From assembly GCA_965240325.2 (NCBI GenBank), contig OZ251238.1, forward strand, positions 806,001 through 870,000: DNA of 64,000 nucleotides, read 5' to 3'. The notes beneath the pieces were generated by a model. That model worked only from the letters and a program-made list of their open reading frames with translations, was not told where the DNA came from and did no database searches. This stretch comes from Rebecca billardiae RCC1528. Lineage: Eukaryota; Protista; Haptophyta. Below, piece after piece: positions 32,932-63,470 of the stretch (positions within the stretch are counted from its first letter, which is position 1; the number at the start of each line of letters is the position of its first letter). The translations under genes and the position numbers were made by a program.

Positions 32932-35900
32932 ATGTCGTCGAGTCTGTTCCTCTCAACACTCTACTTCGATCCGAACGGCGGCACGAACTCGTACATGCGC
33001 GTGTGCGCTGTTGGCGGCTGCGTTCAGCTCGACGCGATACAGTCGTATAACGTGCCCGCCTCGGGCGCAGGTGCGTATGGTGCATCGAACACGCTGAGGA
33101 ACTCGAGAATCGAGGCGCCCGATTGCACCTACCTTATCGATGCCGCTCGGCCCACGGATCCCGCCGTGATCGAGCTGCGCACCTCCCAAGGCCTGGGCTC
33201 GCTTGACATTGACGCGATGGACGGCGATGACTCCTTCACGATCGAGTACACCCGCGGCTGCACGGGCAACTCGCCGGCCGCGACGCTGTCGATGGGCACG
33301 TTCGACGACACGTTCCAGGGCGGGGCCTTCACCGTGTGCACGCTCACCGACGGCGCGATCCAGGGCGAGCTCACTATCGACGCCATCGAGAATGGGTACG
33401 ACTACTTTGCAGACACGGCGCTCGCGAGCTGCCCGTGGTCCTTCGGCGGCCTCACGCCAAGCTCGCCGCCTTCCGCGCCGCCGCCCGCACCGCCTGCGCC
33501 GCCGCCCTGGCCGCCCGGGCTCCCGCCCCAACCGCCGCTGCCGCCTCGCCCGCCCATCCCCGTGCTGCCGGGCCTCTCGATCACGTCCGGCAGCACGCAC
33601 TCGTGCCTGATCGACCCGACGAGCTCGACGATCAAGTGCTGGGGCGACGGCGGCAACGGCCGGCTCGGCACGGGCGACACGTCCGACCGCGGCGGCCAGC
33701 CGAACGAGATGAGCGACGCGCTGCCGGAGCTCGATCTGGGCGTTGCCGGCGAGGCCCCGCTCGAGGTGTACGCCGGCGACGCGCACACATGCGTCCGCTT
33801 CGAGAGCGGCCGTCTCAAGTGCTTTGGCGCTGGCTCGGGCGGGCGCCTCGGCCTGGGCGACGAGCAGGACCGCGGTGACCAGCCCGGCGAGCTGGGCAAC
33901 GCGCTGCCCTGGGTCGACCTTGGCGACGGCCTGAGCGTGCACACGCTCTCGCTCGGCACGAGTCACGCGTGCGCGCTGCTCGAAAGCGCCCGTCTCAAGT
34001 GCTGGGGCGACAACTCGGAAGGGCAGCTCGGGTACGGCGACACGACGACGCGTGGCGTGCTGTCGTCGCAGATGGGCGACTCACTGCCCTTTGTGGACCT
34101 CGGCGCGGGCGCCAACGTGACGGCCGTGAGCGCGGGCGAGACGACGACATGCGCCGTGCTCAACATTGGCGCGCACTCGGGCGTGCTCAAGTGGTGCGTG
34201 CTCGCGCGCTCCCGCCGCCATCGTGCGCCTCGTCCCTTGGCCCCTTGCCGGCGCGTGACACGCGTGCGCGTGCGACCGCACGCGCGCGGTCTGCATCGGC
34301 CCCGCCTGACGTGACTCTCCCACCGCCGTTGCCCCGCCCCTCGCTTGCCTCCACAGCTGGGGCCGTGGAAGTTCCGGCCAGCTCGGCACGGAGGACGCCA
34401 ACTCGCGCGGCGCCACGCCCGGCTCGATGGGCGACGCTCTCCCGCTGATCGCGCTCGGCACGAACGCCGCCTCGATCGAGTCTGTCGCCGCGGGCGCAAA
34501 CCGTGCGTGCGCGCGCCGTGCTCCTCGCCCAGCCGCGCGCCGCGCGCACGAGCACACGCGCAGCGCGCTGAGGGACCGCTGCTCAGCGCATGGCGTGGCC
34601 CCGCTCGCCACGCACGCCGCGCGCAGACACGTGCGTGCTGCTCGACGTGGATGGCAACGGGCTGGGCGGCGACGTGGTGTGCTTCGGCTCTGGCGAGGAC
34701 GGACGACTCGGCACGGAAGACAACCGCACGCGCGGAGACGCGCCGGGCACCATGGGCGACGCCCTCGGCGCCATCAGCCTCGGCGCCAACTACGACGCCA
34801 AGTCGATCTCCGCCTCTGCGCGTGGCTCGTGCGCTGTGGTCACGGGCGGCTTCCTCAAATGTGCGGCGCGCAGCGCGCGCCCGCGTGCGCGCCCTTGCGC
34901 AAGGAGTCGTGCGCCCCGCGCCGCCTCGCGCCGCGCCACACATGCGGCTCACCGCTTCGCAACCTGACGCCGTGCGCGCGCAGGCTGGGGCAGCGGCTCG
35001 AACGGAAGGCTCGGGCAGGGGGACACCCTCTCGCGGGGAGACCGGTCGGGGACCATGGGCGACGCGCTGCCGCCGGTCAACCTGGGCACCGACTATGAGG
35101 ATGACTATGAGCCCGACACCCCGCGCGAGACGGATCCGGACGGCCCGGACTGCGATGCCATCTTGGAGGAGCGCGCGCGGGGCAAGGCGCTCGGGCACGA
35201 CAACAACAACAGCATCGGGCAGGGCCGGCGCAGGCTCAAGTTCGTGTACCGCGACGACTACCATCCGGTCAAGGGCTCGAAGCGCGCGCTGGCCTCCTCG
35301 TTCGGGCGTGATCACAATTGCGTGTACTCGGCGAGCGGAGTCCGATGTGCGCGCACGACTCGCGTCTTCATCGCGCGGCCGTGAGCGCGCTGCCCCTGCC
35401 TCGTGTCCGCCTTGCAACTCACTCCACTTGCCGCGCGACCCCGCCGCGCGCGCAGGCTTTGGCGATGGATCGAAAGGGCAGACGGGCCAAGGCGACCGTG
35501 AAGCGCGCGGCGACAAGGTGTGCGACATGGGCGACTACCTCGGCGATGTGGCGGTGGCATCCAGCCCGCCACCAGCGCCGCCGCCTCTCCCGCCACCCAG
35601 CCCGCCACCGCCGAGCCCGCCACCGCCGCCCGCACCGCCTTCGCCGCCGCCCTGGCCGCCCGCGCTCCCGCCCCAACCGCCGCTGCCGCCTCGCCCGCCC
35701 ATCCCCGTGCTGCCGGGCCTCTCGATCACGTCCGGCAGCACGCACTCGTGCCTGATCGACCCGACGAGCTCGACGATCAAGTGCTGGGGCGACGGCGGCA
35801 ACGGCCGGCTCGGCACGGGCGACACGTCCGACCGCGGCGGCCAGCCGAACGAGATGAGCGACGCGCTGCCGGAGCTCGATCTGGGCGTTGCCGACGAGGC

Positions 35901-38900
35901 CCCGCTCGAGGTGTACGCCGGCGACGCGCACACATGCGTCCGCTTCGAGAGCGGCCGTCTCAAGTGCTTTGGCGCTGGCTCGGGCGGGCGCCTCGGCCTG
36001 GGCGACGAGCAGGACCGCGGTGACCAGTCCGGCGAGCTGGGCAACGCGCTGCCTTGGGTCGACCTTGGCGACGGCCTGAGCGTGCACACGCTCTCGCTCG
36101 GCACGAGTCACGCGTGCGCGCTGCTCGAAAGCGCCCGTCTCAAGTGCTGGGGCGACAACTCGGAAGGGCAGCTCGGGTACGGCGACACGACGACGCGCGG
36201 CGTGCTGTCGTCGCAGATGGGCGACTCACTGCCCTTTGTGGACCTCGGCGCGGGCGCCAACGTGACGGCCGTGAGCGCGGGCGAGACGACGACATGCGCC
36301 GTGCTCAACATTGGCGCGCACTCGGGCGTGCTCAAGTGGTGCGTGCTCGCGCGCTCCCGCCGCCATCGTGCGCCTCGTCCCTTGGCCCCTTTCCGGCGCG
36401 TGCACGCGTGCGCGTGCGACCGCACGCGCGCGGTCTGCATCGGCCCCGCCTGACGTGACTCTCCCACCGCCGTTGCCCCGCCCCTCGCTTGCCTCCACAG
36501 CTGGGGCCGCGGAAGTTCCGGCCAGCTCGGCACGGAGGACGCCAACTCGCGCGGCGCCACGCCCGGCTCGATGGGCGACGCTCTCCCGCTGATCGCGCTC
36601 GGCACGAACGCCGCCTCGATCGAGTCTGTCGCCGCGGGCGCAAACCGTGCGTGCGCGCGCCGTGCTCCTCGCCCAGCCGCGCGCCGCGCGCACGAGCACA
36701 CGCGCAGCGCGCTGACGGACCGCTGCTCGGCGCATGGCGTGGCCCCGCTCGCCACGCACGCCGCGCGCAGACACGTGCGTGCTGCTCGACGCGGATGGCA
36801 ACGGGCTGGGCGGCGACGTGGTGTGCTTCGGCTCTGGCGAGGACGGACGACTCGGCACGGAAGACAACCGCACGCGCGGAGACGCGCCGGGCACCATGGG
36901 CGACGCCCTCGGCGCCATCAGCCTCGGCGCCAACTACGACGCCAAGTCGATCGCCGCCTCTGCGCGTGGCTCGTGCGCTGTGGTCACGGGCGGCTTCCTC
37001 AAATGTGCGGCGCGCAGCGCGCGCCCGCGTGCGCGCCCTTGCGCAAGGAGTCGTGCGCCCCGCGCCGCCTCGCGCCGCGCCGCACGTGCGGCTCACCGCT
37101 TCGCAACCCGACGCCGTGCGCGCGCAGGCTGGGGCAGCGGCTCGAACGGAAGGCTCGGGCAAGGGGACACCCTCTCGCGGGGAGACCGGTCGGGGACCAT
37201 GGGTGACGCGCTGCCGCCGGTCAACCTGGGCACCGACTATGAGGATGACTATGAGCCCGACACTCCGCGCGTGACAGATCCGGACGGCCCGGACTGCGAT
37301 GCCATCTTGGAGGAGCGCGCGCGGGGCAAGGCGCTCGGGCACGACAACAACAACAGCATCGGGCAGGGCCGGCGCAGGCTCAAGTTCGTGTACCGCGACG
37401 ACTACCATCCGATCAAGGGCTCGAAGCGCGCGCTGGCCTCCTCGTTCGGGCGTGATCACAATTGCGTGTACTCGGCGAGCGGAGTCCGATGTGCGCGCAC
37501 GACTCGCGTCTTCATCGCGCGGCCGTGAGCGCGCTGCCCCTGCCTCGTGTCCGCCTTGCAACTCACTCCACTTGCCGCGCGACCCCGCCGCGCGCGCAGG
37601 CTTTGGCGATGGATCGAAAGGGCAGACGGGCCAAGGCGACCGTGAAGCGCGCGGCGACAAGGTGTGCGACATGGGCGACTACCTCGGCGATGTGGCGGTG
37701 GCATCCAGTCCGCCACCAGCGCCGCCGCCTCTCCCGCCACCCAGCCCGCCACCGCCGAGCCCGCCGCCGCCGCCCACACCGCCGCCCGCACCGCCTTCGC
37801 CGCCGCCCTGGCCGCCCGCGCTCCCGCCCCAACCGCCGCTGCCGCCTCGCCCGCCCATCCCCGTGCTGCCGGGCCTCTCGATCACGTCCGGCAGCACGCA
37901 CTCGTGCCTGATCGACCCGACGAGCTCGGTGATCAAGTGCTGGGGCGACGGCGGCAACGGCCGGCTCGGCACGGGCGACACGTCCGACCGCGGCGGCCAG
38001 CCGAACGAGATGAGCGACGCGCTGCCGGAGCTCGATCTGGGCGTTGCCGGCGAGGCCCCGCTCGAGGTGTACGCCGGCGACGCGCACACATGCGTCCGCT
38101 TCGAGAGCGGCCGTCTCAAGTGCTTTGGCGCTGGCTCGGGCGGGCGCCTCGGCCTGGGCGACGAGCAGGACCGCGGTGACCAGCCCGGCGAGCTGGGCAA
38201 CGCGCTGCCCTGGGTCGACCTTGGCGACGGCCTGAGCGTGCACACGCTCTCGCTCGGCACGAGTCACGCGTGCGCGCTGCTCGAAAGCGCCCGTCTCAAG
38301 TGCTGGGGCGACAACTCGGACGGGCAGCTCGGGTACGGCGACACGACGACGCGCGGCGTGCTGTCGTCGCAGATGGGCGACTCACTGCCCTTTGTGGACC
38401 TCGGCGCGGGCGCCAACGTGACGGCCGTGAGCGCGGGCGAGACGACGACATGCGCCGTGCTCAACATTGGCGCGCACTCGGGCGTGCTCAAGTGGTGCGT
38501 GCTCGCGCGCTCCCGCCGCCATCGTGCGCCTCGTCCTTCCGGCGCGTGACACGCGTGCGCGTGCGACCGCACGCGCGCGGTCTGCATCGGCCGCGCCTGA
38601 CGTGACTCTCCCACCGCCGTTGCCCCGCCCCTCGCTTGCCTCCACAGCTGGGGCCGCGGAAGTTCCGGCCAGCTCGGCACGGAGGACGCCAACTCGCGCG
38701 GCGCCACGCCCGGCTCGATGGGCGACGCTCTCCCGCTGATCGCGCTCGGCACGAACGCCGCCTCGATCGAGTCTGTCGCCGCGGGCGCAAACCGTGCGTG
38801 CGCGCGCCGTGCTCCTCGCCCAGCCGCGCGCCGCGCGCACGAGCACACGCGCAGCGCGCTGAGGGACCGCTGCTCGGCGCATGGCGTGGCCCCGCTCACC

Positions 38901-41900
38901 ACGCACGCCGCGCGCAGACACGTGCGTGCTGCTCGACGCGGATGGCAACGGGCTGGGCGGCGACGTGGTGTGCTTCGGCTCTGGCGAGGACGGACGACTC
39001 GGCACGGAAGACAACCGCACGCGCGGAGACGCGCCGGGCACCATGGGCGACGCCCTCGGCGCCATCAGCCTCGGCGCCAACTACGACGCCAAGTCGATCG
39101 CCGCCTCTGCGCGTGGCTCGTGCGCTGTGGTCACGGGCGGCTTCCTCAAATGTGCGGCGCGCAGCGCGCGCCCGCGTGCGCGCCCTTGCGCAAGGAGTCG
39201 TGCGCCCCGCGCCGCCTCGCGCCGCGCCGCACGTGCGGCTCACCGCTTCGCAACCCGACGCCGTGCGCGCGCAGGCTGGGGCAGCGGCTCGAACGGAAGG
39301 CTCGGGCAAGGGGACACCCTCTCGCGGGGAGACCGGTCGGGGACCATGGGTGACGCGCTGCCGCCGGTCAACCTGGGCACCGACTATGAGGATGACTATG
39401 AGCCCGACACTCCGCGCGTGACAGATCCGGACGGCCCGGACTGCGATGCCATCTTGGAGGAGCGCGCGCGGGGCAAGGCGCTCGGGCACGACAACAACAA
39501 CAGCATCGGGCAGGGCCGGCGCAGGCTCAAGTTCGTGTACCGCGACGACTACCATCCGATCGAGGGCTCGAAGCGCGCGCTGGCCTCCTCGTTCGGGCGT
39601 GATCACAATTGCGTGTACTCGGCGAGCGGAGTCCGATGTGCGCGCACGACTCGCACCTTCATCGCGCCGCCGTGCGTGCGCGGCTGCTGCCTCGCGCCCG
39701 CCTTGCAACTCACTCTCGCTTTCCGCGCGACCCCGCCGCGTGCGCAGGCTTTGGCGATGGATCGAAGGGGCAGACGGGCCAAGGCGACCGTGAAGCGCGC
39801 GGCGACAAGGTGTGCGACATGGGCGACTACCTCGGCGATGTGGCGGTGGCATCCAGCCCGCCACCAGCGCCGCCGCCTCTCCCGCCACCCAGCCCGCCAC
39901 CGCCGAGCCCGCCGCCGAGCCCGCCACCGGGCTCGCCGCCGCCGACGCCGCCTCCGCCTGTACCAACTCCACCGCCAAGCCCGCCACCGAGCCCGCCGCC
40001 GAGCCCGCTGCCGTCGCCGCCGCCTAGCCCGCCGCCAAAGCCGCCGCCGCTGCCGTTGCCGCCGCCCAGCCCGCCGCCGAGCCCGCCGCCGTCACCACCG
40101 CCGAGCCCGCCGCCTGCCCCTCCGCCTTCGCTGCCACCGAGCCCGCCACCCAGCCCGCCGCCGTCCCCACCGCCGCCATCGCCACCGCCTTCGCCGCCGC
40201 CATCGCCGCCGCCGAGCCCGCCACCGCCGAGCCCGCCACCCAGCCCGCCGCCGCCGAGCCCGCCTCCGAGTCCTCCGCCGAGCCCACCGCCGAGCCCACC
40301 ACCGCCGCCCTCGCCACCGCCCTCGCCGCCGCCCTCGCCGCCGCCTTCGCCGCCGCCAAGCCCGCCACCGCCGAGCCCGCCACCCAGCCCGCCGCCGCCG
40401 AGCCCGCCACCCAGCCCGCCGCCGTCACCGCCGCCACCAAGCCCGCCGCCGAGCCCGCCGCCGAGCCCGCCTGCGAGCCCGCCGCCGCCCAGCCCGCCGC
40501 CCAGCCCGCCGCCCAGCCCGCCGCCCAGCCCGCCGCCACCGCCGAGCCCGCCGCCGAGCCCGCCGCCCAGCCCGCCGCCGTCACCACCGCCGAGCCCACC
40601 GCCGCCCAGCTCGCCGCCGTCACCGCCGCCGAGCCCGCCTCCGAGTCCGCCGCCGTCGCCACCGCCGAGCCCGCCGCCGAGTCCTCCTCCAAGCCCGCCG
40701 CCCAGCCCACCGCCGCCGCCCACGCCGCCGCCCTCGCCGCCGCCCTCGCCGCCGCCCTCGCCGCCGCCGAGCCCGCCACCGCCGAGCCCACCACCCAGCC
40801 CGCCGCCGCCGAGCCCGCCTCCGAGTCCTCCGCCGAGCCCACCGCCCAGCCCACCGCCGCCACCCTCGCCACCGCCCTCGCCGCCGCCCTCGCCGCCGCC
40901 CTCGCCGCCGCCGAGCCCGCCACCGCCGAGCCCACCACCCAGCCCGCCGCCGCCGAGCCCGCCTCCGAGTCCTCCACCGAGCCCACCGCCGAGCCCACCG
41001 CCCTCACCGCCGCCGCCCTCGCCCCCGCCGTCGCCGCCGCCGAGCCCGCCGCCGAGCCCGCCACCGAGCCCACCGCCGCCACCGAGCCCGCCGCCGAGCC
41101 CACCGCCCAGCCCGCCGCCCAGCCCGCCGCCGAGCCCGCCGCCGAGCCCACCGCCCAGCCCGCCGCCAAGCCCGCCGCCGAGCCCGCCGCCGAGCCCGCC
41201 GCCGAGCCCACCGCCGTCGCCGCCACCGCCGAGCCCGCCGCCGAGTCCGCCGCCGAGTCCGCCGCCAAGCCCGCCGCCACCCAGCCCGCCTCCGAGTCCG
41301 CCACCCAGCCCCCCGCCGAGCCCACCACCGTCGCCGCCACCGCCCTCGCCGCCGCCATCCCCGCCTCCGAGCCCACCACCGCACCCGTCGCCGCCGGCGC
41401 CGCCGCCGAGCCCGCCGCCGTCGCCGCCGCCAAGCCCGCCGCCGAGCCCGCCGCCGAGCCCGCCGCCGCCGCCCAGCCCGCCGCCCAGCCCGCCGCCCAG
41501 CCCGCCGCCGAGCCCGCCGCCGAGCCCGCCGCCGAGCCCGCCGCCGAGCCCGCCGCCGAGCCCACCGCCATCGCCGCCACCGCCGAGCCCGCCGCCGAGC
41601 CCGCCGCCAAGCCCGCCGCCAAGCCCGCCGCCCAGTCCGCCACCAAGCCCGCCGCCCAGCCCGCCGCCGTCACCACCGCCAAGCCCGCCGCCGCCGAGCC
41701 CGCCGCCGAGCCCACCGCCAAGCCCGCCGCCCAGCCCACCGCCGCCGCCAAGCCCGCCGCCGAGCCCGCCGCCGAACCCGCCGCCGAGCCCGCCGCCGAG
41801 CCCGCCGCCGAGCCCGCCGCCGAGCCCGCCGCCGAGCCCGCCACCGAGCCCGCCGCCGAGCCCGCCGCCGAGCCCGCCGCCGAGCCCACCGCCTTCGCCG

Positions 41901-42594
41901 CCACCGCCGAGCCCACCGCCCAGCCCGCCGCCAAGCCCGCCGCCCAGCCCGCCGCCAAGCCCGCCGCCGCCAAGCCCCCCGCCGTCACCACCGCCGAGCC
42001 CGCCGCCGCCGAGCCCGCCGCCGAGCCCGCCGCCGAGCCCGCCGCCGTCGCCACCGCCAAGCCCGCCGCCGAGCCCGCCGCCGAGCCCGCCGCCGAGCCC
42101 ACCGCCGCCGCCGAGCCCGCCGCCGAGCCCGCCGCCGAGCCCGCCGCCGAGCCCGCCGCCGAGCCCGCCGCCGAGCCCGCCGCCGAGCCCGCCGCCGAGC
42201 CCGCCGCCGAGCCCGCCGCCGAGCCCGCCGCCGAGCCCGCCGCCGAGCCCACCGCCGTCACCGCCACCGCCGAGCCCGCCGCCGAGCCCGCCGCCAAGCC
42301 CGCCACCAAGCCCGCCGCCGAGCCCGCCGCCCAGCCCGCCGCCTTCGCCGCCGCCGTCACCACCGCCGAGCCCACCGCCGCCGAGCCCGCCGCCAAGCCC
42401 GCCACCAAGCCCGCCACCGAGCCCGCCGCCGTCGCCACCGCCGAGCCCGCCGCCGCCGAGCCCGCCGCCGTCGCCGCCGCCAAGCCCACCGCCGTCGCCA
42501 CCGCCGAGCCCGCCGCCGCCGAGCCCACCACCGAGCCCGCCGCCAAGCCCGCCGCCGTCGCCACCGCCGAGCCCGCCGCCCTCGCCGCCACCGA

Positions 42595-42633
<39 letters not shown>

Positions 42634-44652
42634 CGAGCCCGCCGCCGAGCCCGCCGCCGAGCCCGCCGCCGAGCCCGCCGCCGAGCCCGCCGCCGAGCCC
42701 GCCGCCGAGCCCGCCGCCGAGCCCGCCGCCGAGCCCGCCGCCGAGCCCGCCACCGTCGCCTCCGCCGCCGAGCCCGCCGCCGAGCCCGCCGCCAAGCCCG
42801 CCGCCAAGCCCGCCGCCCAGTCCGCCACCGAGCCCGCCGCCCAGCCCGCCGCCGTCACCACCGCCGAGCCCGCCGCCGCCGAGCCCGCCGCCGTCACCGC
42901 CGCCAAGCCCACCGCCGAGCCCGCCGCCGTCACCGCCGCCAAGCCCACCGCCGAGCCCGCCGCCGAGCCCGCCGCCGAGCCCACCGCCCAGCCCGCCGCC
43001 GAGCCCGCCGCCGAGCCCGCCGCCGAGCCCGCCGCCGAGCCCGCCGCCTTCGCCGCCGCCTTCGCCGCCGCCGTCCCCTCCACCGTCGCCGCCGCCGAGC
43101 CCACCGCCATCGCCGCCTCCAAGCCCGCCACCGAGCCCGCCACCCAGCCCGCCGCCCAGCCCGCCGCCGAGCCCGCCGCCCAGCCCGCCGCCGAGCCCGC
43201 CGCCTTCGCCCCCGCCGTCGCCGCCGCCGAGTCCACCGCCGTCGCCACCGCCGAGCCCACCGCCATCGCCGCCTCCCAGCCCGCCGCCGAGCCCGCCGCC
43301 GAGCCCGCCGCCGAGCCCGCCGCCGAGCCCGCCGCCGAGCCCGCCGCCGAGCCCGCCGCCGAGCCCGCCACCCAGCCCGCCACCCAGCCCGCCGCCCAGC
43401 CCGCCGCCGAGCCCGCCGCCCAGCCCGCCGCCGAGCCCGCCGCCGAGCCCGCCGCCGAGCCCGCCGCCGAGCCCACCGCCATCGCCGCCTCCAAGCCCGC
43501 CACCCAGCCCGCCACCCAGCCCGCCGCCCAGCCCGCCGCCGAGCCCGCCGCCCAGCCCGCCGCCGAGCCCGCCGCCGAGCCCGCCGCCGAGCCCACCGCC
43601 ATCGCCGCCGCCAAGCCCGCCACCCAGCCCGCCACCCAGCCCGCCGCCGAGCCCGCCGCCGAGCCCGCCGCCGAGCCCGCCGCCGAGCCCGCCTCCAAGC
43701 CCGCCGCCGAGCCCGCCGCCCAGCCCGCCGCCCAGTCCGCCGCCGAGCCCGCCGCCTTCGCCGCCGCCGTCCCCTCCACCGTCGCCGCCTCCGAGCCCAC
43801 CGCCGTCGCCACCACCCAGTCCCCCGCCGTCGCCGCCACCGAGCCCGCCACCAAGCCCACCTCCCAGCCCGCCGCCGAGCCCGCCGCCATCGCCGCCGCC
43901 CTCACCCCCGCCCAGTCCGCCGCCGAGTCCGCCACCGTCCCCACCTCCGAGCCCACCGCCATCGCCGCCTCCCAGCCCGCCACCCAGCCCGCCGCCCAGC
44001 CCGCCACCCAGCCCACCACCCAGCCCGCCGCCGTCGCCACCGCCCTCGCCGCCGCCCTCGCCGCCGCCATCGCCGCCACCGAGCCCGCCACCCAGCCCGC
44101 CGCCGCCATCGCCGCCGCCATCGCCGCCGCCATCGCCGCCGCCATCGCCGCCGCCCAGCCCGCCACCGAGCCCGCCGCCGTCGCCGCCGCCGTCGCCGCC
44201 TCCGCCGAGCCTGCCGCCGAGCCCGCCGCCGAGCCCACCGCCCTCGCCACCATCACCACCGCCGCCCAGCCCTGGCCCTACTCACCCCTCGCCGCCGCCG
44301 GCGCCGCCAGCGCCGCCGCCGGACATGACCGTGCAGGACTACGTCGAGCTCAAGCTCAACCTGACGGGCCTGGACGTGGGCGTTGTGACGGCGGACCTGC
44401 TCGCCGCGATTGCGGAAGAAGCGGGCGTGGACCCCGCACGCCTCTCGATCGAGCGCATCGAGCCGCTGGGCGATGGCGCGTCGCTGGTCGTGGTCAAGTC
44501 GACGGCCAACCCGGCCGCGGGCGAGACGCTGACCGACCTCTCCTCTCTGTTGAAGGAGGTGTCTGAGCAGCCCCCACCGCAGGCGCCGCTGGACGCGCTG
44601 AGCTCGGAGCTGGGCTACACGCTGATCGATGTGCAGCGGCAAGTGCCGCCAT

Positions 44653-44699
<47 letters not shown>

Positions 44700-46575: not shown

Positions 46576-46628
<53 letters not shown>

Positions 46629-46998
46629 CCCAACCACGGCACCGAGGAGTACCTCGGCCTGCACCTGAACACGACGGCGGGTCAGCTGCCGGCCTCGACC
46701 CAGTCCGCGCTGCTGGATGCCGTCGCGGCCGAGCTGGGCGTCGACGCGTCGCGGCTCTCGTTTGAGGAGGTGACCGACCAGGGCGATGGCACCACGAATG
46801 TGGTGATCAAGCTCACTACCGAAGAGTCTTCCGGCGAGTCGCAGGTGGACCCGACATCTCAACTCACGCCCAACAATGGGCCGGGCACACCGTCGTCCCT
46901 CGCCGACCTGTCCGCCAAGCTGGGCGTGCCGGTGGCGGAGCCGCCGTACAACCACGTGCCGCCCTCGCCGCCGCCGGCACCGCCCTCGCCGCCGCCTG

Positions 46999-50000: not shown

Positions 50001-50079
50001 CTGGGCGTGCCGGTGTCCGAGCCGCCGTACAACCACGTGCCGCCCTCGCCGCCGCCGGCACCGCCCTCGCCGCCGCCTG

Positions 50080-50123
<44 letters not shown>

Positions 50124-51615: not shown

Positions 51616-51659
<44 letters not shown>

Positions 51660-53151: not shown

Positions 53152-53195
<44 letters not shown>

Positions 53196-55464
53196 CCCGA
53201 CCACGCCAACGAGGAGTATCTCGCGCTCGAGATCTCGCTCACGCCCGCGCAGCTCGAGGCCGCGCGCGAGTCCCTGCTCGGCGCGCTCGCGGCCGAGCTG
53301 GGCGTCGACGCGTCTCGGCTGTCGTTCGAGTCGATGCTGGACCAGGGCGACGGCACGACGAGTCTCGTCATCAAGCTCACTACCGAAGAGTCTTCCGGCG
53401 AGTCGAAGGTGGACCCGACATCTCAACTCACACCCAACAATGGGCCGGGCACGCCGTCGTCGCTCGAGGAGCTCTCGGAGAGGCTGGGCGTGCCGGTTGT
53501 GGACACGCCGCACGACCACGTGCCGCCCTCGCCGCCGCCCGCGCCGCCCTCGCCGCCCGCATCGCCGCCGTACCCTGCGCCGCCGCCCAACCTCGAGCTG
53601 TACGAGTTTGCGGCCGTGACGATCGACTCGACTGAGCTCGACTTCGAGGACTTCTCGATCGACTTCATCGCGGAGGTGGCAGCGGCGCTCGGCGTCGATC
53701 CAGAGCGGCTTGCCGTGCACGCCGTCGAGGGGCTGAGCGACACGGCCACGCGCGTCGTCATCCGCATCCGCAACGACCCTTCGGCTGGCGATGCGCCGGT
53801 GGATGCGGTGGGGACGCTCTCGCAGGGGCCCTCCACGCCCACGCAGAGGCTGAGCGACGTGCTGGGCGTGCCCATACTCGACGTACCGGACGCGTTCGAG
53901 CCGCCCTCGCCGCCGCCCTCGCCGCCGTCGCCGCCGCCGGACCTGACGGTGGAGGACTACGTCGAGCTGCGGCTCAACCTCACGACGTGGGAGGCGGCCG
54001 CTGTGGCGGACGAGCTGCTGGCCGCGCTGGCGGAGGCGGCGGGCGTGGACCCGTCGCGCCTCTCGATCGAGCGGATCGAGCCGCTCGGCGAGGACGACGC
54101 CCTGGTCGTGATCAAAGCGACGGCCAACCCGGCCGCGGGCGAGACGCTGACCGACCTCTCCTCTCTGTTGAAGGAAGTGTCCGAGCAGCCCCCACCGCAG
54201 GCGCCGCTGGACGCGCTGAGCTCGACGCTCGGGTACACGCTCGTGAGTGTGCACTCGCACATGCCGCCCTCTGTCCCACCGTCGCCGCCGACGCCACCCT
54301 CGCCTCCCTCGCCGCCTTCGCCGCCGCCTGACCACGCCAACGAGGAGTATCTCGCGCTCGAGATCTCGCTCACGCCCGCGCAGCTCGAGGCCGCGCGCGA
54401 GTCCCTGCTGGCCTCGCTCGCGGCCGAGCTGGGCGTCGACGCGTCTCGGCTCTCGTTCGAGTCGGTGGCCGACCAGGGCGACGGCACCACCAAGCTCGTG
54501 ATCAAGCTGAAGACCGAAGAATCTTCCGGCGAGTCGAAGGTGGACCCGACATCTCAACTCACACCCAACAATGGGCCGGGCACACCGACATCGCTCGAGG
54601 AGCTCTCGGAGAGGCTGGGCGTGCCGGTGTCCGAGCCGCCGTACAACCACGTGCCGCCCTCGCCGCCGCCGGCACCACCGTCGCCACCCGCGCCGCCGCC
54701 CGACCACGCCAACGAGGAGTATCTCGCGCTCGAGATCTCGCTCACGCCCGCGCAGCTTGAGGCCGTGCAGGCGGCGCTGCTGGCCTCGCTCGCGGCCGAG
54801 CTGGGCGTCGACGCGTCTCGGCTCTCGTTCGAGGCGGTGACCGACGAGGGCGACGGCACCACGAAGCTCGTGATCAAGCTGACGAGCGGTTCGTCTGCCG
54901 GCGAGTCAATGGTGGACCCGACAGCTCAACTCACGCCCAACAATGGGCCGGGCACGCCGTCGTCCCTCGCCGACCTGTCCGCCAAGCTGGGCGTGCCGGT
55001 GGCCGAGCCACCGTACAACCACGTGCCGCCCTCACCGCCGCCAGCACCGCCCTCGCCGCCATCGCCGCCACCGTCGCCGCCGTTGCCGCCCTCGCCGCCA
55101 TCACCACCGTCGCCGCCTCCGGACCTTGAGAACGAGGAGTACGTCGCGCTGACGGTCGCGATGACGCCCGCGCAGCTCGAGGCCACGCGCGAGTCCCTGC
55201 TCGGCGCGCTCGCGGCCGAGCTGGGCGTCGACGCGTCTCGGCTGTCGTTCGAGTCGGTGACCGACCAGGGCGACGGCACGACCAAGCTCGTGATCAAGCT
55301 GACGAGCGATTCGTCTGCCGGCGAGTCAATGGTGGACCCGACAGCTCAACTCACACCCAACAATGGGCCGGGCACCCCGTCGTCCCTCGCCGACCTGTCC
55401 GCCAAGCTGGGCGTGCCGGTGTCCGAGCCGCCGTACAACCACGTGCCGCCCTCGCCGCCGCCCG

Positions 55465-55499
<35 letters not shown>

Positions 55500-58400
55500 C
55501 CCGACCTGGAGCTGTACGACTTTGCCTCTGTGATTGTCAACTCGACCGAGGCTGCCTTCGGCGAGCTCTCAATCGACTTCATCGCGAAGGTCGCTGTGGC
55601 GTTGGGCGTCGATCCGGAGCGGCTGGCCGTGCACGCCGTCGAGGGGCTGAGCGACACGGCCACGCGCGTCGTCATCCGCATCCGCAATGACCCCGCGGTG
55701 GGCGATCCACCCGTGGACGCGGTTGCGACGCTGTCGCCGAGCACGCTGCCGTTGACGGCTGCGCAGAAGCTGACGAATGCGCTGGGCGTGCCCGTGCTCC
55801 AGGTGCCCGACGCGTTCGAGCCACCTGCGCCGCCTCCGTCGCCGCCGTCGCCGCCGACGTCACCACCATTGCCGCCATCGCCGCCCTTGCCTCCTTCACC
55901 GCCACCTGACTTCAGCACGGAGGACTACGTCGAGCTGCTGCTCAACATGACGACTTCGCAGGTGTCGGCGGCGGCGGACGAGTTGCTCGCCGCGCTGGCG
56001 GAGGCAGCTGGCATCGACGCCTCGCGCCTGTCGATCGAGCGGATCGAGCCGGTGGGCGATGGCGCGTCGCTGGTCGTGGTGAAATCGACGGCCAACCCGG
56101 CCGCGGGCGAGACGCTGACCGACCTCTCGTTGATGCTCAAGCAAGTCTCAGATGAGCCAGCGCCCGCGTCGCCTTTGGACACGCTGGGCGCTGAGCTGGG
56201 GTACACGCTGGTGACCGTGCAGTGGCACATGCCGCCCTCGTCACCGCCCGTGCCGCCCTCGCCACCGTCACCGCCATCGCCACCGCCGCAGCTCGACTCT
56301 GAGGAGTACGTCAGCCTGCGCGTTGCGATGCCGGCGGACGAGCTGCTGCGCTCGGCCAACAGCTCGCTGCTCGCCGCTATCGCGGCTGAGCTGGGCGTCG
56401 ACGCGTCTCGTCTTTCGTTCGAGGCCATCACCGACCAGGGCGACGGCACGACCAAGCTCGTGATCAAGCTCACTACCGAAGAGTCTTCCGGCGAGTCGAA
56501 GGTGGACCCGACAGCTCAACTCACACCCAACAATGGGCCGGGCACACCGTCGTCCCTCGCCGACCTGTCCGCCAAGCTGGGCCTCCCTGTGGTGGACGAG
56601 CCGTACAACCACGTGCCGCCGTCGCCGCCGCCCTCGCCACCAACGCCGCCCTCGCCTCCTCCCTCGCCGCCATCGCCGCCATCGCCGCCATCGCCGCCAT
56701 CGCCGCCGCCCGACCACGCCAGCGAGGAGTATCTCGCGCTCGAGATCTCGCTCACGCCCGCGCAGCTTGAGGCCGTGCAGGAGGCGCTGCTGGCCTCGCT
56801 CGCGGCCGAGCTGGGCGTCGACGCGTCTCGGCTCTCGTTCGAGTCGGTGGCCGACCAGGGCGACGGCACCACCAAGCTCGTGATCAAGCTGACGACCGAA
56901 GAGTCTTCCGGCGAGTCGCAGGTGGACCCGACAGCTCAACTCACACCCAACAATGGGCCGGGCACGCCGTCTTCGCTGGCAGACCTTTCCGCCAAGCTGG
57001 GCGTGCCGGTGTCCGAGCCGCCGTACAACCACGTGCCGCCCTCGCCGCCGCCAGCACCGCCGTCGCCACCCGCGTCGCCACCGTCGCCCTCGCCGCCGCC
57101 CAACTTCGAGCTGTATGACTACGCGGCGGTGATTGTCAACTCGACCGAGGCTGCGTTCAGCGAGTCCTCGTTGGACTTCATCGCGAAGGTCGCCGCGGCG
57201 CTGGGCGTCGATCCGGAGCGGCTGGCCCTGCACAGCACGACTGGGATCACCGAGACGACGACTCGCGTCGTGATCCGCATCCGCAAAGACCCTGCCGTGG
57301 GCGAGGCGCCGGCTGACGCGGTCGCGAAGCTGTCGCAGGGCACGCCGCCGTTGACGGCCGCGCAGAAGCTGACGAATGCGCTCGGCGTGCCCGTGCTCGA
57401 GGTGCCCGACGCGTTCGAGCCCCCAGTTCCGCCGCCATCGCCTCCTCCGTTGCCACCCCCGCCATCGCCGCCCTTGCCTCCTTCACCGCCACCTGACTTC
57501 AGCACGGAGGACTACGTCGAGCTGAAGCTCAACCTGACGGGCTTGGACGTGGACGAGGCCAGCGCACAGCTGCTCTCCGGCATTGCCGTGGCAGCTTCTG
57601 TGGACCCGTCTCGCCTCTCAGTCGAGCGGATCGAGCCTCTGGACGATGGCATCGTGGTGGTCGTGGTCAAGGCCACCACCAACCCGGCCACAGGCGAGAC
57701 CTTGACGGAGCTTTCATCTGTGCTTCAACCGCATCCCCCAACGCCCGCTCCGCTGGATGAGCTGAGCGCTGTGCTGGGGTACACGCTGGTGACCGTGCAG
57801 TGGCACATGCCGCCCTCGTCACCGCCCGTGCCGCCCTCGCCACCGTCACCGCCATCGCCACCGCCGCAGCTCGACTCTGAGGAGTACGTCAGCCTGCGCG
57901 TTGCGATGCCGGCGGACGAGCTGCTGCGCTCGGCCAACAGCTCGCTGCTCGCCGCTATCGCGGCTGAGCTGGGCGTCGACGCGTCTCGTCTTTCGTTCGA
58001 GGCCATCACCGACCAGGGCGACGGCACGACCAAGCTCGTGATCAAGCTGACGAGCGATTCGTCTGCCGGCGAGTCGAAGGTGGACCCGACAGCTCAACTC
58101 ACACCCAACAACGGGCCGGGCACGCCGTCTTCGCTGGCAGACCTTTCCGCCAAGCTGGGCGTGCCGGTGTCCGAGCCGCCGTACAACCACGTGCCGCCGT
58201 CGCCGCCGCCCTCGCCGCCAACGCCGCCCTCGCCTCCTCCCTCGCCGCCATCGCCGCCCTCGCCACCATCGCCGCCCTCGCCGCCGCCCAACCACGCCAA
58301 CGAGGAGTATCTCGCGCTCGAGATCTCGCTCACGCCCGCGCAGCTCGAGGCCGTGCAGGAGGCGCTGCTGGCCTCGCTCGCGGCCGAGCTGGGCGTCGAC

Positions 58401-61335
58401 GCGTCTCGGCTCTCGTTCGAGGCGGTGGCCGACCAGGGCGACGGCACCACCAAGCTCGTGATCAAGCTGACGACCGAAGAGTCTTCCGGCGAGTCGAAGG
58501 TGGACCCGACAGCTCAACTCACGCCCAACAACGGGCCGGGCACACCGTCTTCGCTCGCCGACCTGTCCGCCAAGCTGGGCGTGCCGGTGGCGGAGCCGCC
58601 GTACAACCACGTGCCGCCCTCGCCGCCGCCGGCACCGCCCTCGCCACCCGCGTCGCCACCGTCGCCCTCGCCGCCGCCCGACCTGGAGCTGTACGACTTC
58701 GCCTCTGTGATTGTCAACACGACGGAGGCTGCGTTCAGCGAGCTCTCGATCGACTTCCTTGCAGAGGTCGCCGCGGCGCTCGGCGTCGATCCAGAGCGGC
58801 TTGCCGTACACGCCGTCGAGGGGCTGAGCGACACGACGACGCGCGTCGTCATCCGCATTCGCAAGGACCCGTCAGTCGGCGAGGCGCCCGTGGATCTCGT
58901 CGAGCTGCTCTCGCGCGTGCCGCCGCCGCCGCTGCTCTCGCCGCTCGAGCAGCTCAGCGACCGGCTGGGCGTGCCGTTGGTCGAGGTGCCGAAGGCCTTC
59001 GAGCCACCGTCTTCACCACCCTCGACGCCGCCCACGCCGCCGCCTCCGTCGCCGCCGCCCGACCTCACCAGGGAGGACTACGTCGACCTCAAGCTCAACC
59101 TGACCGGCCTGGACGTGGACGCGGTGACGGCGCAGCTGCTGACGACGATCGCGGCGCAGGCCGAGATCGACGTGTCGCGGCTCTCGATCGAGAGGATCGA
59201 GTACCTGCCGGGCGGGGTTGCGAAGGTAGTCGTCAAGTCGACGGCCGACGCGGCCGCCGGCGAGACGCTCACCGACCTCAGAGCCCTTCTCAAGCCCGCG
59301 CCGCCCGTGCAGGCGCCGCTGGCGGCGCTGAGCGAGAAGGTGGGCTACACGCTCGTGAGCGCGCACAGGCACACGCCCCCGTCCCCACCGCCGGCGCCAC
59401 CGACGCCGCCATCGCCGCCGGCGCCGCCTCCCGACCTGGACTCTGAGGAGTACCTGGGCCTGCACCTCGATGTGCCAGTCGATCAGCTGATGAGCTCAGC
59501 CAACACCACGACGCTGCTCACCGCGCTCGCGGCCGAGCTGGGCGTCGACGTGTCTCGGCTCTCGTTCGAGGCGGTGATGGACCTCGGCGACGGCACCACC
59601 AAGCTCGTGATCAAGCTGACGACCGAAGAGTCTTCCGGCGAGTCGAAGGTGGACCCGACATCTCAGCTCACACCCAACAATGGGCCGGGCACACCGACAT
59701 CGCTCGAGGAGCTCTCGGAGAGGCTGGGCGTGCCGTTGGTCGACGAGCCGTACAACCACGTGCCGCCGTCGCCGCCGCCCACGCCGCCGTCACCGCCGCC
59801 CGCGCCGCCCTCGCCACCCTCGCCGCCCTCGCCGCCCTCGCCGCCGCCCGACCACGCCAACGAGGAGTACGTGGCGCTCACGCTGGACCTGTCGCCAGAG
59901 CAGACCGAGGCCGTGCAGGAGGCGCTGCTGGCCTCGCTCGCGGCCGAGCTGGGCGTCGACGTGTCTCGGCTCTCGTTCGAGGTGGGGATCGACCAGGGCG
60001 ACGGCACGACCAAGCTCGTGGTCAAGCTGACGACCGAAGAGTCTTCCGGCGAGTCGAAGGTGGACCCGACAGCTCAACTCACGCCCAACAATGGGCCGGG
60101 CACACCGTCGTCCCTCGCCGACCTGTCCGCCAAGCTGGGCGTGCCGGTGTCCGAGCCGCCGTACAACCACGTGCCGCCCTCGCCACCGCCGGCACCGCCC
60201 TCGCCACCCTCGCCACCCTCGCCGCCCTCGCCGCCGCCCGACCACGCCAGCGAGGAGTACGTGGCTCTTACGCTGAATCTGACGCTCGTGCAGCTCGACG
60301 CCGCGCGCGAGTCCCTGCTCGGCGCCCTCGCTGGCGAGCTGGGCGTCGACGCGTCTCGGCTCTCGTTCGAGTCGGTGGCCGACCAGGGCGACGGCACGAC
60401 CCAGCTCGTCATCAAGCTGAAGACCGACGAGTCTTCCGGCGAGTCGAAGGTGGACCCGACAGCTCAACTCACGCCCAACAATGGGCCGGGCACACCGTCG
60501 TCCCTCGCCGATCTCTCGGAGAGGCTCGGCGTGCCGGTGTCGGAGCCGCCGTACAACCACGTGCCGCCCTCGCCACCGCCCGCACCGCCGTCGCCACCCG
60601 CGTCGCCCCCGTCACCCTCGCCGCCGCCCAACCTCGAGCTGTACGACTACGTCGCGGTGATTGTCAACTCGACCGAGGCTGCGTTCAGCGAGCTCTCGAT
60701 CGACTTCATCGCGGAGGTCGCCAGGACACTCGGCGTCGACCCTGACCGGATATCCGTGGACACCGTCGAGGGGCTGAGCGACACGGCCACGCGCGTCGTC
60801 ATCCGCGTCCGCAACGATCCGTCGGCCAGCGACGATCCCATCGACGCAGTGGGCACGCTGATGCAGGAGCCGCCGGCGCAGCTCTCCGCGTTGGCCTGGC
60901 TCAGCGCCACCCTCGGCGTCCCGGTGCTCGAGGTGCCGACCGCGTTCGAGCCGCCCTCGCCGCCGCCCTCGCCGCCATCGCCGCCGTCGCCGCCGCCCAA
61001 CCTGGGCGAGGAGGAGTACGTGGCGCTCGCCATCAACCTCACGATCGCCGAGTTTGACGGCCTGCGCACGGAGCTCCTGCTGACCCGCATCGCGGAGCGG
61101 CTCGGCATCGACCGCGAGCGCGAGTCCATCGAGCTCGTCGTCGAGCGCACCGAGGACGGCATCCTCGTGGTCGTCAAGATCCGCGTGCGCGAGGGCGAGG
61201 ACTTTGCGGACCCGGTCGGGCGGCTCACGCCGCTCAACGGGCCGGACGCGCCGCGCTCGCTCGAGGAGCTCTCCGAGTGGCTGGGCGTGCCCGTGCTCGC
61301 GATCTTCTCGCACGTGCCGCCCTCGCCGCCGCCCG

Positions 61336-61394
<59 letters not shown>

Positions 61395-63470
61395 TACCTG
61401 ATGGTGGAGGACTACCTGGCGCTCACGCTCGCGCTCACGCCCGAGCAGCTGGGCGCGGCGGAGGGCGCGCTGCTCGCCTCGATCGCGGCGCAGCTCGGCG
61501 TGGACGTGTCGCGGCTCTCGGTCGAGCTGGTCAGCCCACTGGGCGACGGCACGACCAAGTTCGTCGTCAAGCTCTCCACCGACCTGTTCGCAGGCGAGAC
61601 CCCCATCGATTTCTCGGCGCGCATCATGGCGCCCGCGGCGCGCGTCAGTGCGGGTGGCGGCGCCGGCAGCGACGGCGCCGGCTGCGGCAACTCCACCAAC
61701 TCGACGAACCAGACCAACGGCACGGGCATCAACTGCACCAGCAGCACCGAGCCATCCGCCCAGTCGCTCCTCGAGGGGCTGAGCGCGCTGCTGAGCGTGC
61801 CAGTCGCAGCGCTGCCGTACAACCACGTGCCGCCGTCGCCGCCGCCCGCGCCGCCCGCGCCGCCGCCAGACCAATCGACCGAGGAGTACATCGCGCTGGA
61901 GGTGGACCTGCCGTGGTACGCGGTCGCGGAGGGCTCGAGCGCGCTGCTCGCCGCGATGGCCGCGTGCCTCGGCGCCTCGCCCGAGCGCTTCTCGCTCGAG
62001 CTCACGCAGGAGCTCGGCACGAGCCGGACCAAGGTTGTGGTGAAACTTACGACGAACTTTGGCGCCGGCGAGGCGCCCGTGAACCCGACGGCGCGGCTCA
62101 CGCCAAACAATGGGCCGGGCACGCCGGTTTCGCTCGACGCGGTGTCGGACTGCCTAGGCGTGCCCGTCGTCGCCGACCCGTACAACCACGTGCCGCCGGC
62201 GCCGCCGCCGTCGCCACCGCCGCCGCCGATCACGCCGCGCAGCCCGCCCGCCGCGCCGCCGCAGCCGCCGCCGAGCGAGAGCGACCCCAACCTGCTGCTC
62301 GACCCGCAGGTGGCGCCCGGGGCGGGCGTCTTCAGGCCCAACGACGACCTCAACGTCGGTGGCGAGAGCACGGCGGGCACGAACAACGTGATCGACATCC
62401 GCGACCTGTGGGACGTCATCCGGGAGGCCCTGGCCGACCCGCGCACGGGCGCGTGGACGCTCGGCGGGATCGTCTTCGGCGGCATCTTTGTGATCGGCCT
62501 CATCGCCGGCGGTGTGTGGTACATCGTCACGCGCCGCCGGCGCAAGCGCGAGAGCACTTTCAGGGAGCTCTTCATCCCCGCGTTCGGCCTGGGCGGCTTT
62601 CGCCTGCAGATTCGCCCACTCCTCGCCGCCAAGCCACTTGCCGTGGTTCCCCCGCCGCCGGCGGCGCCGCCCGTTCAGGTGGAGCGGCCGACCACCGACT
62701 ACTCGTGGAGCTTCCTGCCCGGAGGGTCGAAGAAGCGCCCCGGGAGGCGCCCAAGCCTCGGCGATCCCAACGACCTGCGCGACGTGCCCGTCTCGGCGAG
62801 CGGGATGCCCGTCGTGCTCGTGCAAAGCCCGCCGCAGCACTCGCGCCGGAGCTTCGGCGGCGGCGTCCGGCTGACGCCGCTGCCGAGCCCTGTCGGGAGG
62901 ACCCCGAGCCTCGGCGGCAACCGGCCGACCAAGCTCCCCGCCACCCTGGACGATGACGTGTCCAGCCCGACGACCACGCCCGCCATCCAGAGCCGACGCC
63001 CGGGCGCGCTCCCCTTGACGCTCAGCCCCGACACGTCGCCGCAGGCCGCCGCGAGGCGCAGGCCCCCGCCGCCCGCCAGCCAGGAGGGTGTAGCCTCGAC
63101 CACGTTCCGTACGCGCCTGTCGTTCCTGCCGGCCTCGCCCCCCAAGATCCCCCGGCGCAGCTTGGACCGCAAAGACACGGGCGGGCGTCGCATCCTGCAT
63201 CAACCGGGTGGCAAGATCACGATCGGCCAGCTCGATAAGCCGCTCCGGCCGCCGTCCGACTCGGGCGCATCCGACTCGCTCGTGAGCTCGAGAATGGGAC
63301 CTCAGCCTCCGGATCCCGGCAAGGGCAACGCCACGCCCACGAACAAGCCGCCCTGGCGGCCGCCGCCGCCGCCGCCGTCCGATTCGAGCTCATCCGGCTC
63401 GCACGTGAGCTCCAGAACGGTGCCTCTGCCTCGGGATTCAGGCAAGGGCAACAACCCGCCGCCCAAGTAA
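32932..63470 (+). CDS. Giant ~9,660-aa single-pass surface protein: 3x RCC1-type propeller, (SP3-4)n rod, 46 SEA-like modules, TM, cytoplasmic tail (13 exons)
   Basis: Exons 32932-34193, 34357-34502, 34627-34860, 34984-35346, 35456-36338, 36501-36646, 36771-37004, 37128-37490, 37600-38494, 38648-38793, 38918-39151, 39275-39637, 39748-63470. All 12 introns are GTGCG...CAG. Splicing keeps frame (28,992 nt = 9,663 aa + stop) and rebuilds the RCC1 motifs LKC|WG, ANH|TC, LKC|WG and VRC|FG. The 5' end is uncertain. Confidence 0.82.
33480..39900 (+). repeat. Three near-identical tandem copies of a ~2.15-kb exon+intron cassette, each encoding one 7-bladed RCC1/BLIP-II-like propeller plus a Pro linker
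   Basis: Equivalent donors at 34194, 36339 and 38495. Introns per copy are 163/124/123/109, 162/124/123/109 and 153/124/123/110 nt. Each copy has seven (H/T/G)xC...C(W/F)G...G(R/Q)(L/T)G.(G/E)D...RG....(M/L)GD.LP.(V/I).LG blades. Confidence 0.9.
39852..44321 (+). repeat. ~1,490-codon extensin/HRGP-like Ser-Pro3/Ser-Pro4 rod
   Basis: Near-continuous AGC/TCG-CCG-CCG-CCG units. SPPP and SPPPP are mixed up to ~42880, followed by ~100 uninterrupted SPPP units (~42882-44093). Confidence 0.95.
44322..62192 (+). repeat. Array of 46 ~105-aa SEA-like modules (10 A, 26 B/B', 10 C) joined by PPSPP linkers; 1,536-bp super-repeat in the centre
   Basis: A = DYVEL.LNLT...RLSIERIEP; B = EEYLAL...RLSFE..DQGDGTT.LVIKL...TPNNGPGTP; C = LELYD/EF...EGLSDTATRVVI.IRNDP. 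Equivalent positions 47813, 49349, 50885, 52421 and 53957 are exactly 1,536 bp apart. Confidence 0.9.
62451..62549 (+). other. Single transmembrane helix with GxxxG motifs followed by a basic stop-transfer cluster
   Basis: AWTLGGIVFGGIFVIGLIAGGVWYIV-TRRRRKR. Confidence 0.85.

Follow-up and report, generated by a model that had tools for sequence, protein, structure and literature searches.

The locus described here lies in a stretch of 64,000 nucleotides (nt) from the haptophyte Rebecca billardiae RCC1528 (contig OZ251238.1, positions 806,001 to 870,000), referred to below as the window; all coordinates are given on the window and, unless indicated otherwise, on its + strand. Between positions 32932 and 63470, a single spliced frame encodes a protein of 9,663 amino acids (aa; 981 kDa), in which a Cys-containing N-terminal domain and three RCC1-type propellers are followed by a Ser-Pro rod, 46 SEA-like modules, one transmembrane helix and a C-terminal tail. 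The coding sequence runs from the ATG at 32932 to the stop codon at 63468-63470, comprises 28,992 nt with no internal stop and spans, together with 12 GT-AG introns of 109-163 nt each, ~30.5 kb. A preliminary description of this DNA, prepared without database searches, had listed all of these features, including one frame of ~9,660 aa and three times seven propeller blades; each was recovered at its coordinates and every count was reproduced. On balance, we think that the product of this single gene is probably a type I membrane glycoprotein of roughly 1 MDa, i.e. a single-polypeptide surface fibril with a propeller head at its distal end. Its segments are the following:

32932-33456, +: N-terminal domain, aa 1-175 (from translation and hydropathy)
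33565-35565, +: RCC1 propeller 1, aa 212-705; seven blades, four introns, insert of ~75 aa in blade 6
34194-34356, 34503-34626, 34861-34983 and 35347-35455, +: introns of propeller copy 1
35566-35709, +: xPP linker of 48 aa between propellers 1 and 2
35710-37709, +: RCC1 propeller 2, aa 754-1247; four introns
36339-36500, 36647-36770, 37005-37127 and 37491-37599, +: introns of propeller copy 2
37866-39857, +: RCC1 propeller 3, aa 1300-1793; four introns, last blade in the exon of the rod
38495-38647, 38794-38917, 39152-39274 and 39638-39747, +: introns of propeller copy 3
39858-44321, +: Ser-Pro3 rod, aa 1794-3281 (1,488 aa)
44322-62192, +: array of 46 SEA-like modules
62193-62444, +: juxtamembrane stretch of 84 aa, Pro-rich and then acidic
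62445-62528, +: single predicted transmembrane helix, then RRRRKR; by the positive-inside rule, the C-terminus would be cytoplasmic
62529-63470, +: putative cytoplasmic tail of 313 aa, basic (+27) and Pro/Ser-rich, lacking a domain match and ending at the stop

The last exon (39748-63470) lies within a + strand open frame of 7,953 codons (39609-63470). Upstream of it, three DNA cassettes of 2.15 kb, which are mutually 97-98% identical, each contain four short GT-AG introns, placed by eye in the first copy and by pattern in copies 2 and 3. Three of the four introns per cassette interrupt the Cys codon of the motif [KR]C[WF]G and the remaining one interrupts the His codon of N-HTC; their removal restores the canonical RCC1 motifs LKCWG, NHTC, LKCWG and VRCFG. 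A tblastn search with three secreted RCC1 homologues returned blocks at ~33.5-34.17, 34.34-34.51, 34.62-35.35 and 35.44-35.6 kb, whose reading frame switches at the predicted introns, thereby providing independent support for their placement. The junction between head and rod needs no splice, because a single exon encodes both the last blade of propeller 3 and the rod, with no stop between them, and the rod continues unbroken into module 1. An exact-product look-up of the open reading frame (ORF) in the first exon gave no record. The propeller cassettes (33400-39950) are alike in the positions and phases of their introns, and donor k of an earlier copy can be joined in-frame to acceptor k of a later one. 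Thus, cassette skipping would rebuild a whole chimeric propeller, and isoforms with one, two or three heads are in principle conceivable. The low-GC gap that precedes the ATG contains a strong donor (GTGAGT) at 32653 and an acceptor (CGCAG) that ends at 32901. The interval 32653-32901 may be an intron of the 5’ untranslated region, which would add no coding sequence and would leave the question of a signal peptide, to which we return below, unsolved.

The frame is continuous and bears the marks of selection on coding sequence. Base composition predicts ~100 stops over the span 39609-63470 and none is observed. In every segment outside the rod, i.e. in the N-terminal domain, the propellers, the modules and the tail, the GC content of third codon positions (GC3) amounts to 0.83-0.89, as compared to 0.54-0.62 for second positions (GC2). 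For the rod, the evidence lies in frame-keeping, not in openness. Its longest perfect (SPPP) run, comprising 102 units, is encoded by 33 different 12-mers, and hence all DNA variation in this run is synonymous. The 39 of its 363 units that are longer exceed the others by exactly +3 or +6 nt, corresponding to one or two Pro codons, and frameshifts do not occur. The ratio of nonsynonymous to synonymous substitution rates (dN/dS) is 0.18-0.87 among modules of the same type and 0.26-0.68 among the propeller copies. GC content drops to 50-64% both directly before the ATG (32585-32931) and past the stop at 63470, marking the limits of the gene. Opposite the rod and the module array, the - strand has open frames of 1,411 aa (40024-44259) and 2,429 aa (47418-54707). 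These giant antisense ORFs were ruled out as coding by GC3 and by the fold evidence; they are by-products of high GC content and of the repeats and can easily mislead ORF callers.

The spliced protein contains 21 RCC1 blade signatures, that is three times seven, and each propeller comprises 494 aa. When tested against the Pfam profiles PF00415, PF13540 and PF25390 at gathering score, the exon products matched RCC1_2 with 65.7-68.7 bits (cut-off 22) and RCC1 with 40.5-41.4 bits (cut-off 21.7), and the RCC1-like domain matched as well. A phmmer search of PDB returned UVR8 as the best solved relative (E 4.6e-22), in addition to RPGR and HERC. The earlier assignment to the RCC1 type was thereby borne out; judged by the blade signatures, from which closure of the blades is also predicted, the head consists of three seven-bladed RCC1 propellers. 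We found 562 propeller homologues at E <= 1e-3, the best of which are 47-52% identical; those named by source are bacterial (Chondromyces, Bdellovibrionia, Actinomycetota) or algal (Volvox, Ectocarpus). All four RCC1 homologue sequences that were read start with a signal or lipoprotein leader. The closest relatives are thus of the secreted type, which supports an extracellular location of the head. Sequons for N-glycosylation (N-x-S/T) occur four times per propeller and 29 times in the modules. In each propeller, blade 6 (35016-35330 in the first cassette, with equivalents in the other two) carries a charged insertion of ~75 aa (DYEDDYEPD ... RRRLKFVYRDDYHP), which is missing from the four aligned secreted RCC1 relatives and is a candidate specificity loop. 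The N-terminal domain (175 aa) that precedes the propellers is acidic and beta-rich, contains six Cys and lacks Lys. It has no match in Pfam and no relatives among proteins of 231-735 aa. Comparison with the Atlas yielded only weak leads to RTX-like bacterial clusters (scores <=0.87), and a single-sequence AF2 model of this domain failed, with a predicted local distance difference test (pLDDT) value of 32.

The rod is built from 363 units, including 296 SPPP (82%), 30 SPPPP and 9 SPPPPP. The SP4 and SP5 units are scattered through its distal two thirds, and its proximal third is almost pure SP3. It thus contains the Ser-Pro(3-5) repeats by which extensin-type sequences are recognized. Tyr cross-link motifs (YXY, VYK) were not found: Tyr is absent from the rod units and, among the Pro-rich stretches, occurs only further downstream, in linkers between modules of types B and C (motif PPYPAPPP). 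The first ~24 residues of the rod are identical to the linkers after propellers 1 and 2, and the DNA duplication reaches position 39943, so that the rod looks like an expanded inter-propeller linker. For the TLP-4 glycofibril, which is likewise built from a tetrapeptide repeat, a rise of 12.4 Å per repeat has been determined (PMC11725842), in agreement with the value of ~0.31 nm per residue assumed in the preliminary description. With this rise, the rod would extend to ~0.46 µm. The polyproline period is not the same throughout the protein, being four in the rod (SPPP) and three in the linkers between the modules (SPP), which suggests two polyproline/glycosylation ‘codes’ in one polypeptide.

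The 46 modules measure 104-116 aa (about 108), except for one of 145 aa, and fall into three sequence types, A, B and C. Their order is ABBBC, five times ABBC, ABBBC, ABBC, ABBC, ABBBC and B?B, i.e. an A-B-B(-B)-C super-repeat. The (SPP)n linkers of 12-32 aa, which sum up to 980 residues, have lengths set by the flanking types (C>A 13, A>B 22, B>B 29 and B>C 22 aa). Four central super-repeats of 1,536 bp are 97.1-99.4% identical, with 9-44 differences per 1,536 bp. The net charge is approximately -12 per module and -650 for the ectodomain as a whole. By sequence, the modules remain apart from known families: Pfam returned nothing above threshold, SEA (PF01390) was not listed at E <= 0.1 for 1,450 aa of modules, and comparison with SEA clusters by language model scored no higher than 0.78. 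The SEA autoproteolysis motif GS[VI]V is absent from the entire protein; the turn between beta2 and beta3 reads DQGDGTT, GEDDA or LSDTAT instead.

An AlphaFold model of the module, for which the 46 paralogues served as alignment, reached a pLDDT of 95.1 and a predicted template modelling score (pTM) of 0.86 and displays the order beta-alpha-beta-beta-alpha-beta (E-H-E-E-H-E). Foldseek comparison of this model with PDB gave weak matches (best E 3e-3), and among the AFDB clusters the top match is a marine-protist ‘SEA domain-containing protein’ (template modelling score (TM) 0.66). When VIA-align was run against all PDB representatives, membrane-adjacent SEA-like/MAD ectodomains made up 13 of the 18 best matches, including CELSR1 (Z 9.5), PCDH15 MAD12 (8.7), CDH23 MAD28 (8.6), IA-2 (7.4), Notch2 HD (7.1) and Trop2 (6.3); Z values of 7.0-7.5 were obtained for the SEA domain of MUC16. 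Shape searches of Swiss-Prot and the ESM Atlas additionally identified the C-terminal domain of KIAA0319 (TM up to 0.72), plant ALE2_N and haptophyte Ephrin_rec_like proteins. Thus, the designation ‘SEA-like’ of the preliminary description holds at the level of the modelled fold and does not extend to a Pfam SEA match or to the G-S-V-V cleavage motif: the modules are SEA-like by predicted fold and outside Pfam SEA by sequence. They form a new and rare sequence family, for which the model shows the shape of a membrane-adjacent ferredoxin-type ectodomain. The best structural matches as a group (PCDH15 MAD12, CDH23 MAD28, CELSR1, the KIAA0319 C-terminal domain, IA-2/phogrin and Notch HD; Z 7.1-9.5, TM 0.65-0.72) are all extracellular and located next to the membrane. 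They are single and juxtamembrane, in contrast to the 46 copies over ~6,000 residues in Rebecca, and share 6-21% identity with them.

A module profile searched against 1.84 billion protein representatives retrieved only 14 proteins at E <= 1e-3, including a metagenome fragment, a transcriptome fragment of Pavlova gyrans (one module plus Pro linker, 36% identity) and a Rhodomonas protein. The protist proteins among them combine ephrin-receptor-like Cys repeats with three to four modules adjoining a transmembrane segment, and RCC1 occurs in none of the 14. On an unrelated metagenome contig of 3.2 kb (63% GC), a (PPPS)9 stretch leads directly into at least nine homologous modules (27-30% identity, E 2e-37). 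As judged from this sequence, the rod-to-module junction is conserved in another organism. In the metagenome relative, L001, the module array changes its reading frame within an overlap of ~115 bp (L001:1195-1310); a short intron, a frameshift or an error in the sequence may underlie this change. Between its modules, L001 has short linkers of a non-proline type where the Rebecca protein has (SPP)n. Searches for relatives had been proposed at the outset; they recovered the rod-to-module junction and did not recover the full architecture. No giant relative of 4,350-13,800 aa was found in a set of 5.8 billion protein clusters with region 5000-7906 of the last exon as query, and two metagenome scans, with the module alignment and with the L001 protein, yielded no confirmed locus. 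Literature searches on RCC1 combined with haptophytes, SEA or hydroxyproline-rich glycoproteins (HRGPs), on giant SEA proteins in haptophytes and on Pavlova hairs and knob scales returned nothing relevant. The combination of three RCC1 propellers, SP3 rod, 46 SEA-fold modules and a single transmembrane helix was not encountered in the protein databases and literature searched, and the initial statement that no described protein unites these elements is therefore not contradicted.

With respect to topology, the protein has one strong hydrophobic segment (aa 9323-9352, Kyte-Doolittle 2.25), which is followed by RRRRKR; no other segment exceeds 1.6. The tail has no domain match in Pfam. The single transmembrane segment with its RRRRKR flank, the charges of tail (+27) and ectodomain (-650) and the 29 sequons in the modules are clues that point to a type I arrangement. 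It is thus reasonable to propose a fibril that would project from the surface of the cell or flagellum, anchored by one transmembrane helix and a basic, disordered cytoplasmic tail. Proximal to the membrane, ~6,000 residues of strongly acidic SEA-like beads would be strung on stiff (SPP)n polyproline-II spacers. Further outward would follow the (SPPP)n rod of ~1,490 residues, with probable hydroxylation and O-linked sugars as in extensins and mastigoneme HRGPs. At the far end, the three RCC1-type seven-bladed propellers and the small Cys-containing tip domain could constitute a multivalent binding head, with adhesion, recognition of a partner or prey, or sensing as candidate roles. Adding linkers (~0.3 µm) and 46 beads (roughly 0.15 µm) to the rod (~0.46 µm), we infer a total length of ~0.9-1 µm for the fully extended molecule. 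Secretion and binding of a ligand by the head are likewise assumptions of this model, and its possible function as adhesin, hair or coat is read from the architecture only.

Giant membrane-anchored surface fibrils of the HRGP or mucin kind are known as such; the SEA-like module family is new. By analogy, the nearest functional precedent appears to be MST3/Mstax, an 8,572-aa membrane-anchored HRGP with 42 repeats and a PKD2-like anchor, of which one copy forms the core of the 800-nm mastigoneme of Chlamydomonas (PMC11015965), and the nearest precedent for the bead array MUC16. The preliminary description had missed MST3/Mstax. By its published description, that protein resembles the Rebecca protein in being a giant membrane-anchored single polypeptide (8,572 versus 9,663 aa) with long polyproline-II segments in tens of repeats (42 versus 46 plus the rod). 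It differs in its multi-pass PKD2-like anchor, its MST1 sheath and the lack of an RCC1 head and SEA-like beads, whereas the Rebecca protein has a single transmembrane segment with a long cytoplasmic tail and an SPPP-based rod instead of P13...P11(XXP)3 repeats. Indeed, Pfam found no polycystin match in the C-terminal 856 aa. MUC16 (CA125) and other membrane mucins share the type I anchor, a short or unstructured tail and a huge N-terminal region, glycosylated in the mucins and putatively so in the alga, and MUC16 has dozens of tandem SEA-fold modules (~110-156 aa) on glycosylated linkers rich in Pro, Ser and Thr. However, the modules of the alga match neither Pfam SEA nor G-S-V-V, its linkers and rod are of the extensin-type SPP/SPPP as compared to the PTS of these animal mucins, and an RCC1 head is unknown in mucins. 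The precedent for a head carried on a shaft is provided by the Chlamydomonas agglutinins SAG1 and SAD1, which like extensin-type HRGPs contain SP3-SP5 motifs and which place a globular head on a long Ser-Pro(n) polyproline-II shaft for cell-cell recognition. They comprise about 3,300-3,900 aa and are extrinsic to the membrane, and we know of no RCC1 or SEA-like modules in them. Plant extensins differ by Tyr cross-link motifs, which the Rebecca rod lacks. Secreted RCC1 proteins, including those of the BLIP-II type, have the seven-bladed propeller in common (40-52% identity to proteins from myxobacteria, Bdellovibrionia, Actinomycetota, Volvox and Ectocarpus), but are single propellers of ~400-500 aa, whereas Rebecca chains three of them and fuses them to a rod. 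TLP-4 is similar in its linear chain of S/T-P-x-x tetrapeptides that forms a fibril via a glycan shell (PMC11725842), and differs in being seen as a free fibril devoid of folded domains; this comparison refers to its published repeat.

Several observations weigh against a membrane-anchored fibril with a propeller head. The proposed topology, with an ectodomain of 9,300 aa, requires a signal peptide, and none is convincing at the modelled start (MSSSLFLSTLYF...), which is weakly hydrophobic (9-residue Kyte-Doolittle 1.49 at M1 and 1.68 after M22); an upstream exon bearing a leader was not found in the gap of 347 bp (32585-32931). Either this weak hydrophobic start works as a leader or the model is truncated at its 5’ end. 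As to the module fold, the first-ranked structural match is the intracellular ferredoxin-like domain of Nup54 (Z 10.2), and for a fold of this ferredoxin-like type, Z values of 7-10 are no more than middling. Across the rod, no stop closes any of the three frames, and openness by itself is weak proof there. For 32600-35600 no RNA run is listed, and the sole public run that holds the locus (X1) yields short, low-depth contigs. As these contigs are unspliced over the intron borders 34193/4, 34860/1 and 34983/4, X1 behaves as DNA and is uninformative on transcripts. Finally, the three 2.15-kb cassettes and the four 1,536-bp super-repeats are near-identical, and their copy numbers are those given by the assembly alone.

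Some of these points lead to the view that the gene model is wrong, i.e. that the RCC1 head and the rod with its modules are separate transcripts, that cassettes are skipped or that repeats are mis-assembled, in which case a 9,663-aa protein would not exist as such. We regard this as improbable. In its favour are the modelled start, which shows no convincing signal peptide, the fact that no RNA run is listed, and the failure to find a giant protein from the locus, or a relative of 4,350-13,800 aa, in the 5.8-billion-cluster set; the repeats are near-identical, and the common intron phases would keep skipped products in frame. However, propeller 3 and the rod lie in one exon without a stop, the rod keeps the frame over 4.4 kb, its units varying only by +3 or +6 nt, and repeat copies that differ at 9-44 positions per 1,536 bp are resolvable by long reads. 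In addition, the rod-to-module junction recurs on an independent contig, and the fall in GC content on both sides (32585-32931 and after 63470) frames the model. That the locus is a decaying or silent repeat-rich pseudogene, with open frames as a by-product of 72-86% GC and repeats, is hardly conceivable. Long spurious antisense ORFs, such as that of 2,429 aa at 47418-54707 (-), do arise here and every frame is open in the rod, but the ~100 expected stops are missing, GC3 is far above GC2 in all segments compared, the rod varies synonymously only, the module model reaches a pLDDT of 95 and all 12 splice sites are intact.

A different view accepts the protein and doubts the role of its head: it might be a passive, polyanionic, sugar-coated hair or brush, such as a non-tubular flagellar hair or a glycocalyx against viruses, grazers and fouling, in which the propellers would serve self-assembly or bundling and from which the ectodomain may be shed into mucilage. 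The charge of -650, with about -12 per module, the extensin- or TLP-4-like rod, the SEA-like domains typical of membrane mucins and the example of MST3/Mstax, which demonstrates that a single giant HRGP can form the core of a flagellar hair, all fit such a role. For a mere spacer, it would nevertheless be costly to retain three conserved propellers together with a tip domain that contains Cys, under purifying selection (dN/dS 0.26-0.68). The SEA cleavage motif that would permit shedding is missing, and a cytoplasmic tail of 313 aa suggests that the protein is coupled to the inside of the cell. We therefore give the passive hair a limited chance of being correct and favour the fibril with a binding head.

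If expressed as modelled, this fibril protein would be among the largest proteins predicted for any alga and a clean example of a single-polypeptide cell-surface fibre. It would join principles that are known only separately, i.e. the HRGP shaft of plants and green algae, the tandem SEA-fold beads of animal mucins and tip-link cadherins, and the mostly bacterial secreted RCC1 propellers. It would be a directly testable candidate for haptophyte surface biology (flagellar hairs, adhesion, contact with viruses or grazers), a field whose molecular parts list is almost empty, and the rod would offer a natural substrate of 1,488 residues for the hydroxyproline-glycosylation code outside the green lineage. 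More speculatively, and with little expectation that all of it applies, the protein could represent a haptophyte-specific class of ‘propeller-on-a-stalk’ single-polypeptide surface organelles. A µm-long tether would present an RCC1 head that captures a partner (cell, prey, virus or surface), and the chain of 46 beads would be extensible, force-bearing or force-sensing and coupled to a cytoplasmic signalling tail; the cadherin-23/protocadherin-15 tip link and MUC16 would be its counterparts by convergence. In-frame skipping of cassettes could serve to tune how many heads, from one to three, are present. Equally, the fine non-tubular hairs on the flagella of Pavlovales might have this protein as their core.

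Upstream of the gene, a 1,348-aa ORF (28538-32584, +) encodes an Ala/Arg-rich product, which has no Pfam match and contains the motif F-S-x-E-Q-S-L-A-V-L-E-T-G twice. This ORF ends in a stop 347 bp before the giant gene and looks like a separate gene. The X1 contigs are 99-100% identical to the window in the propeller region and show 8-11 differences per ~250 bp as well as small indels in the upstream gene (29650-32650), and one of them jumps over 31877-32361; this suggests that the X1 sample is a different strain or haplotype. Still further upstream, a 24-kb stretch with 79-84% GC (4000-28000, +) contains overlapping ORFs of 4,639 and 2,683 aa. The window as a whole is eukaryotic DNA with a GC content of 60-87%; for Diacronema lutheri, a GC content of 73% is reported (PMC8379373).

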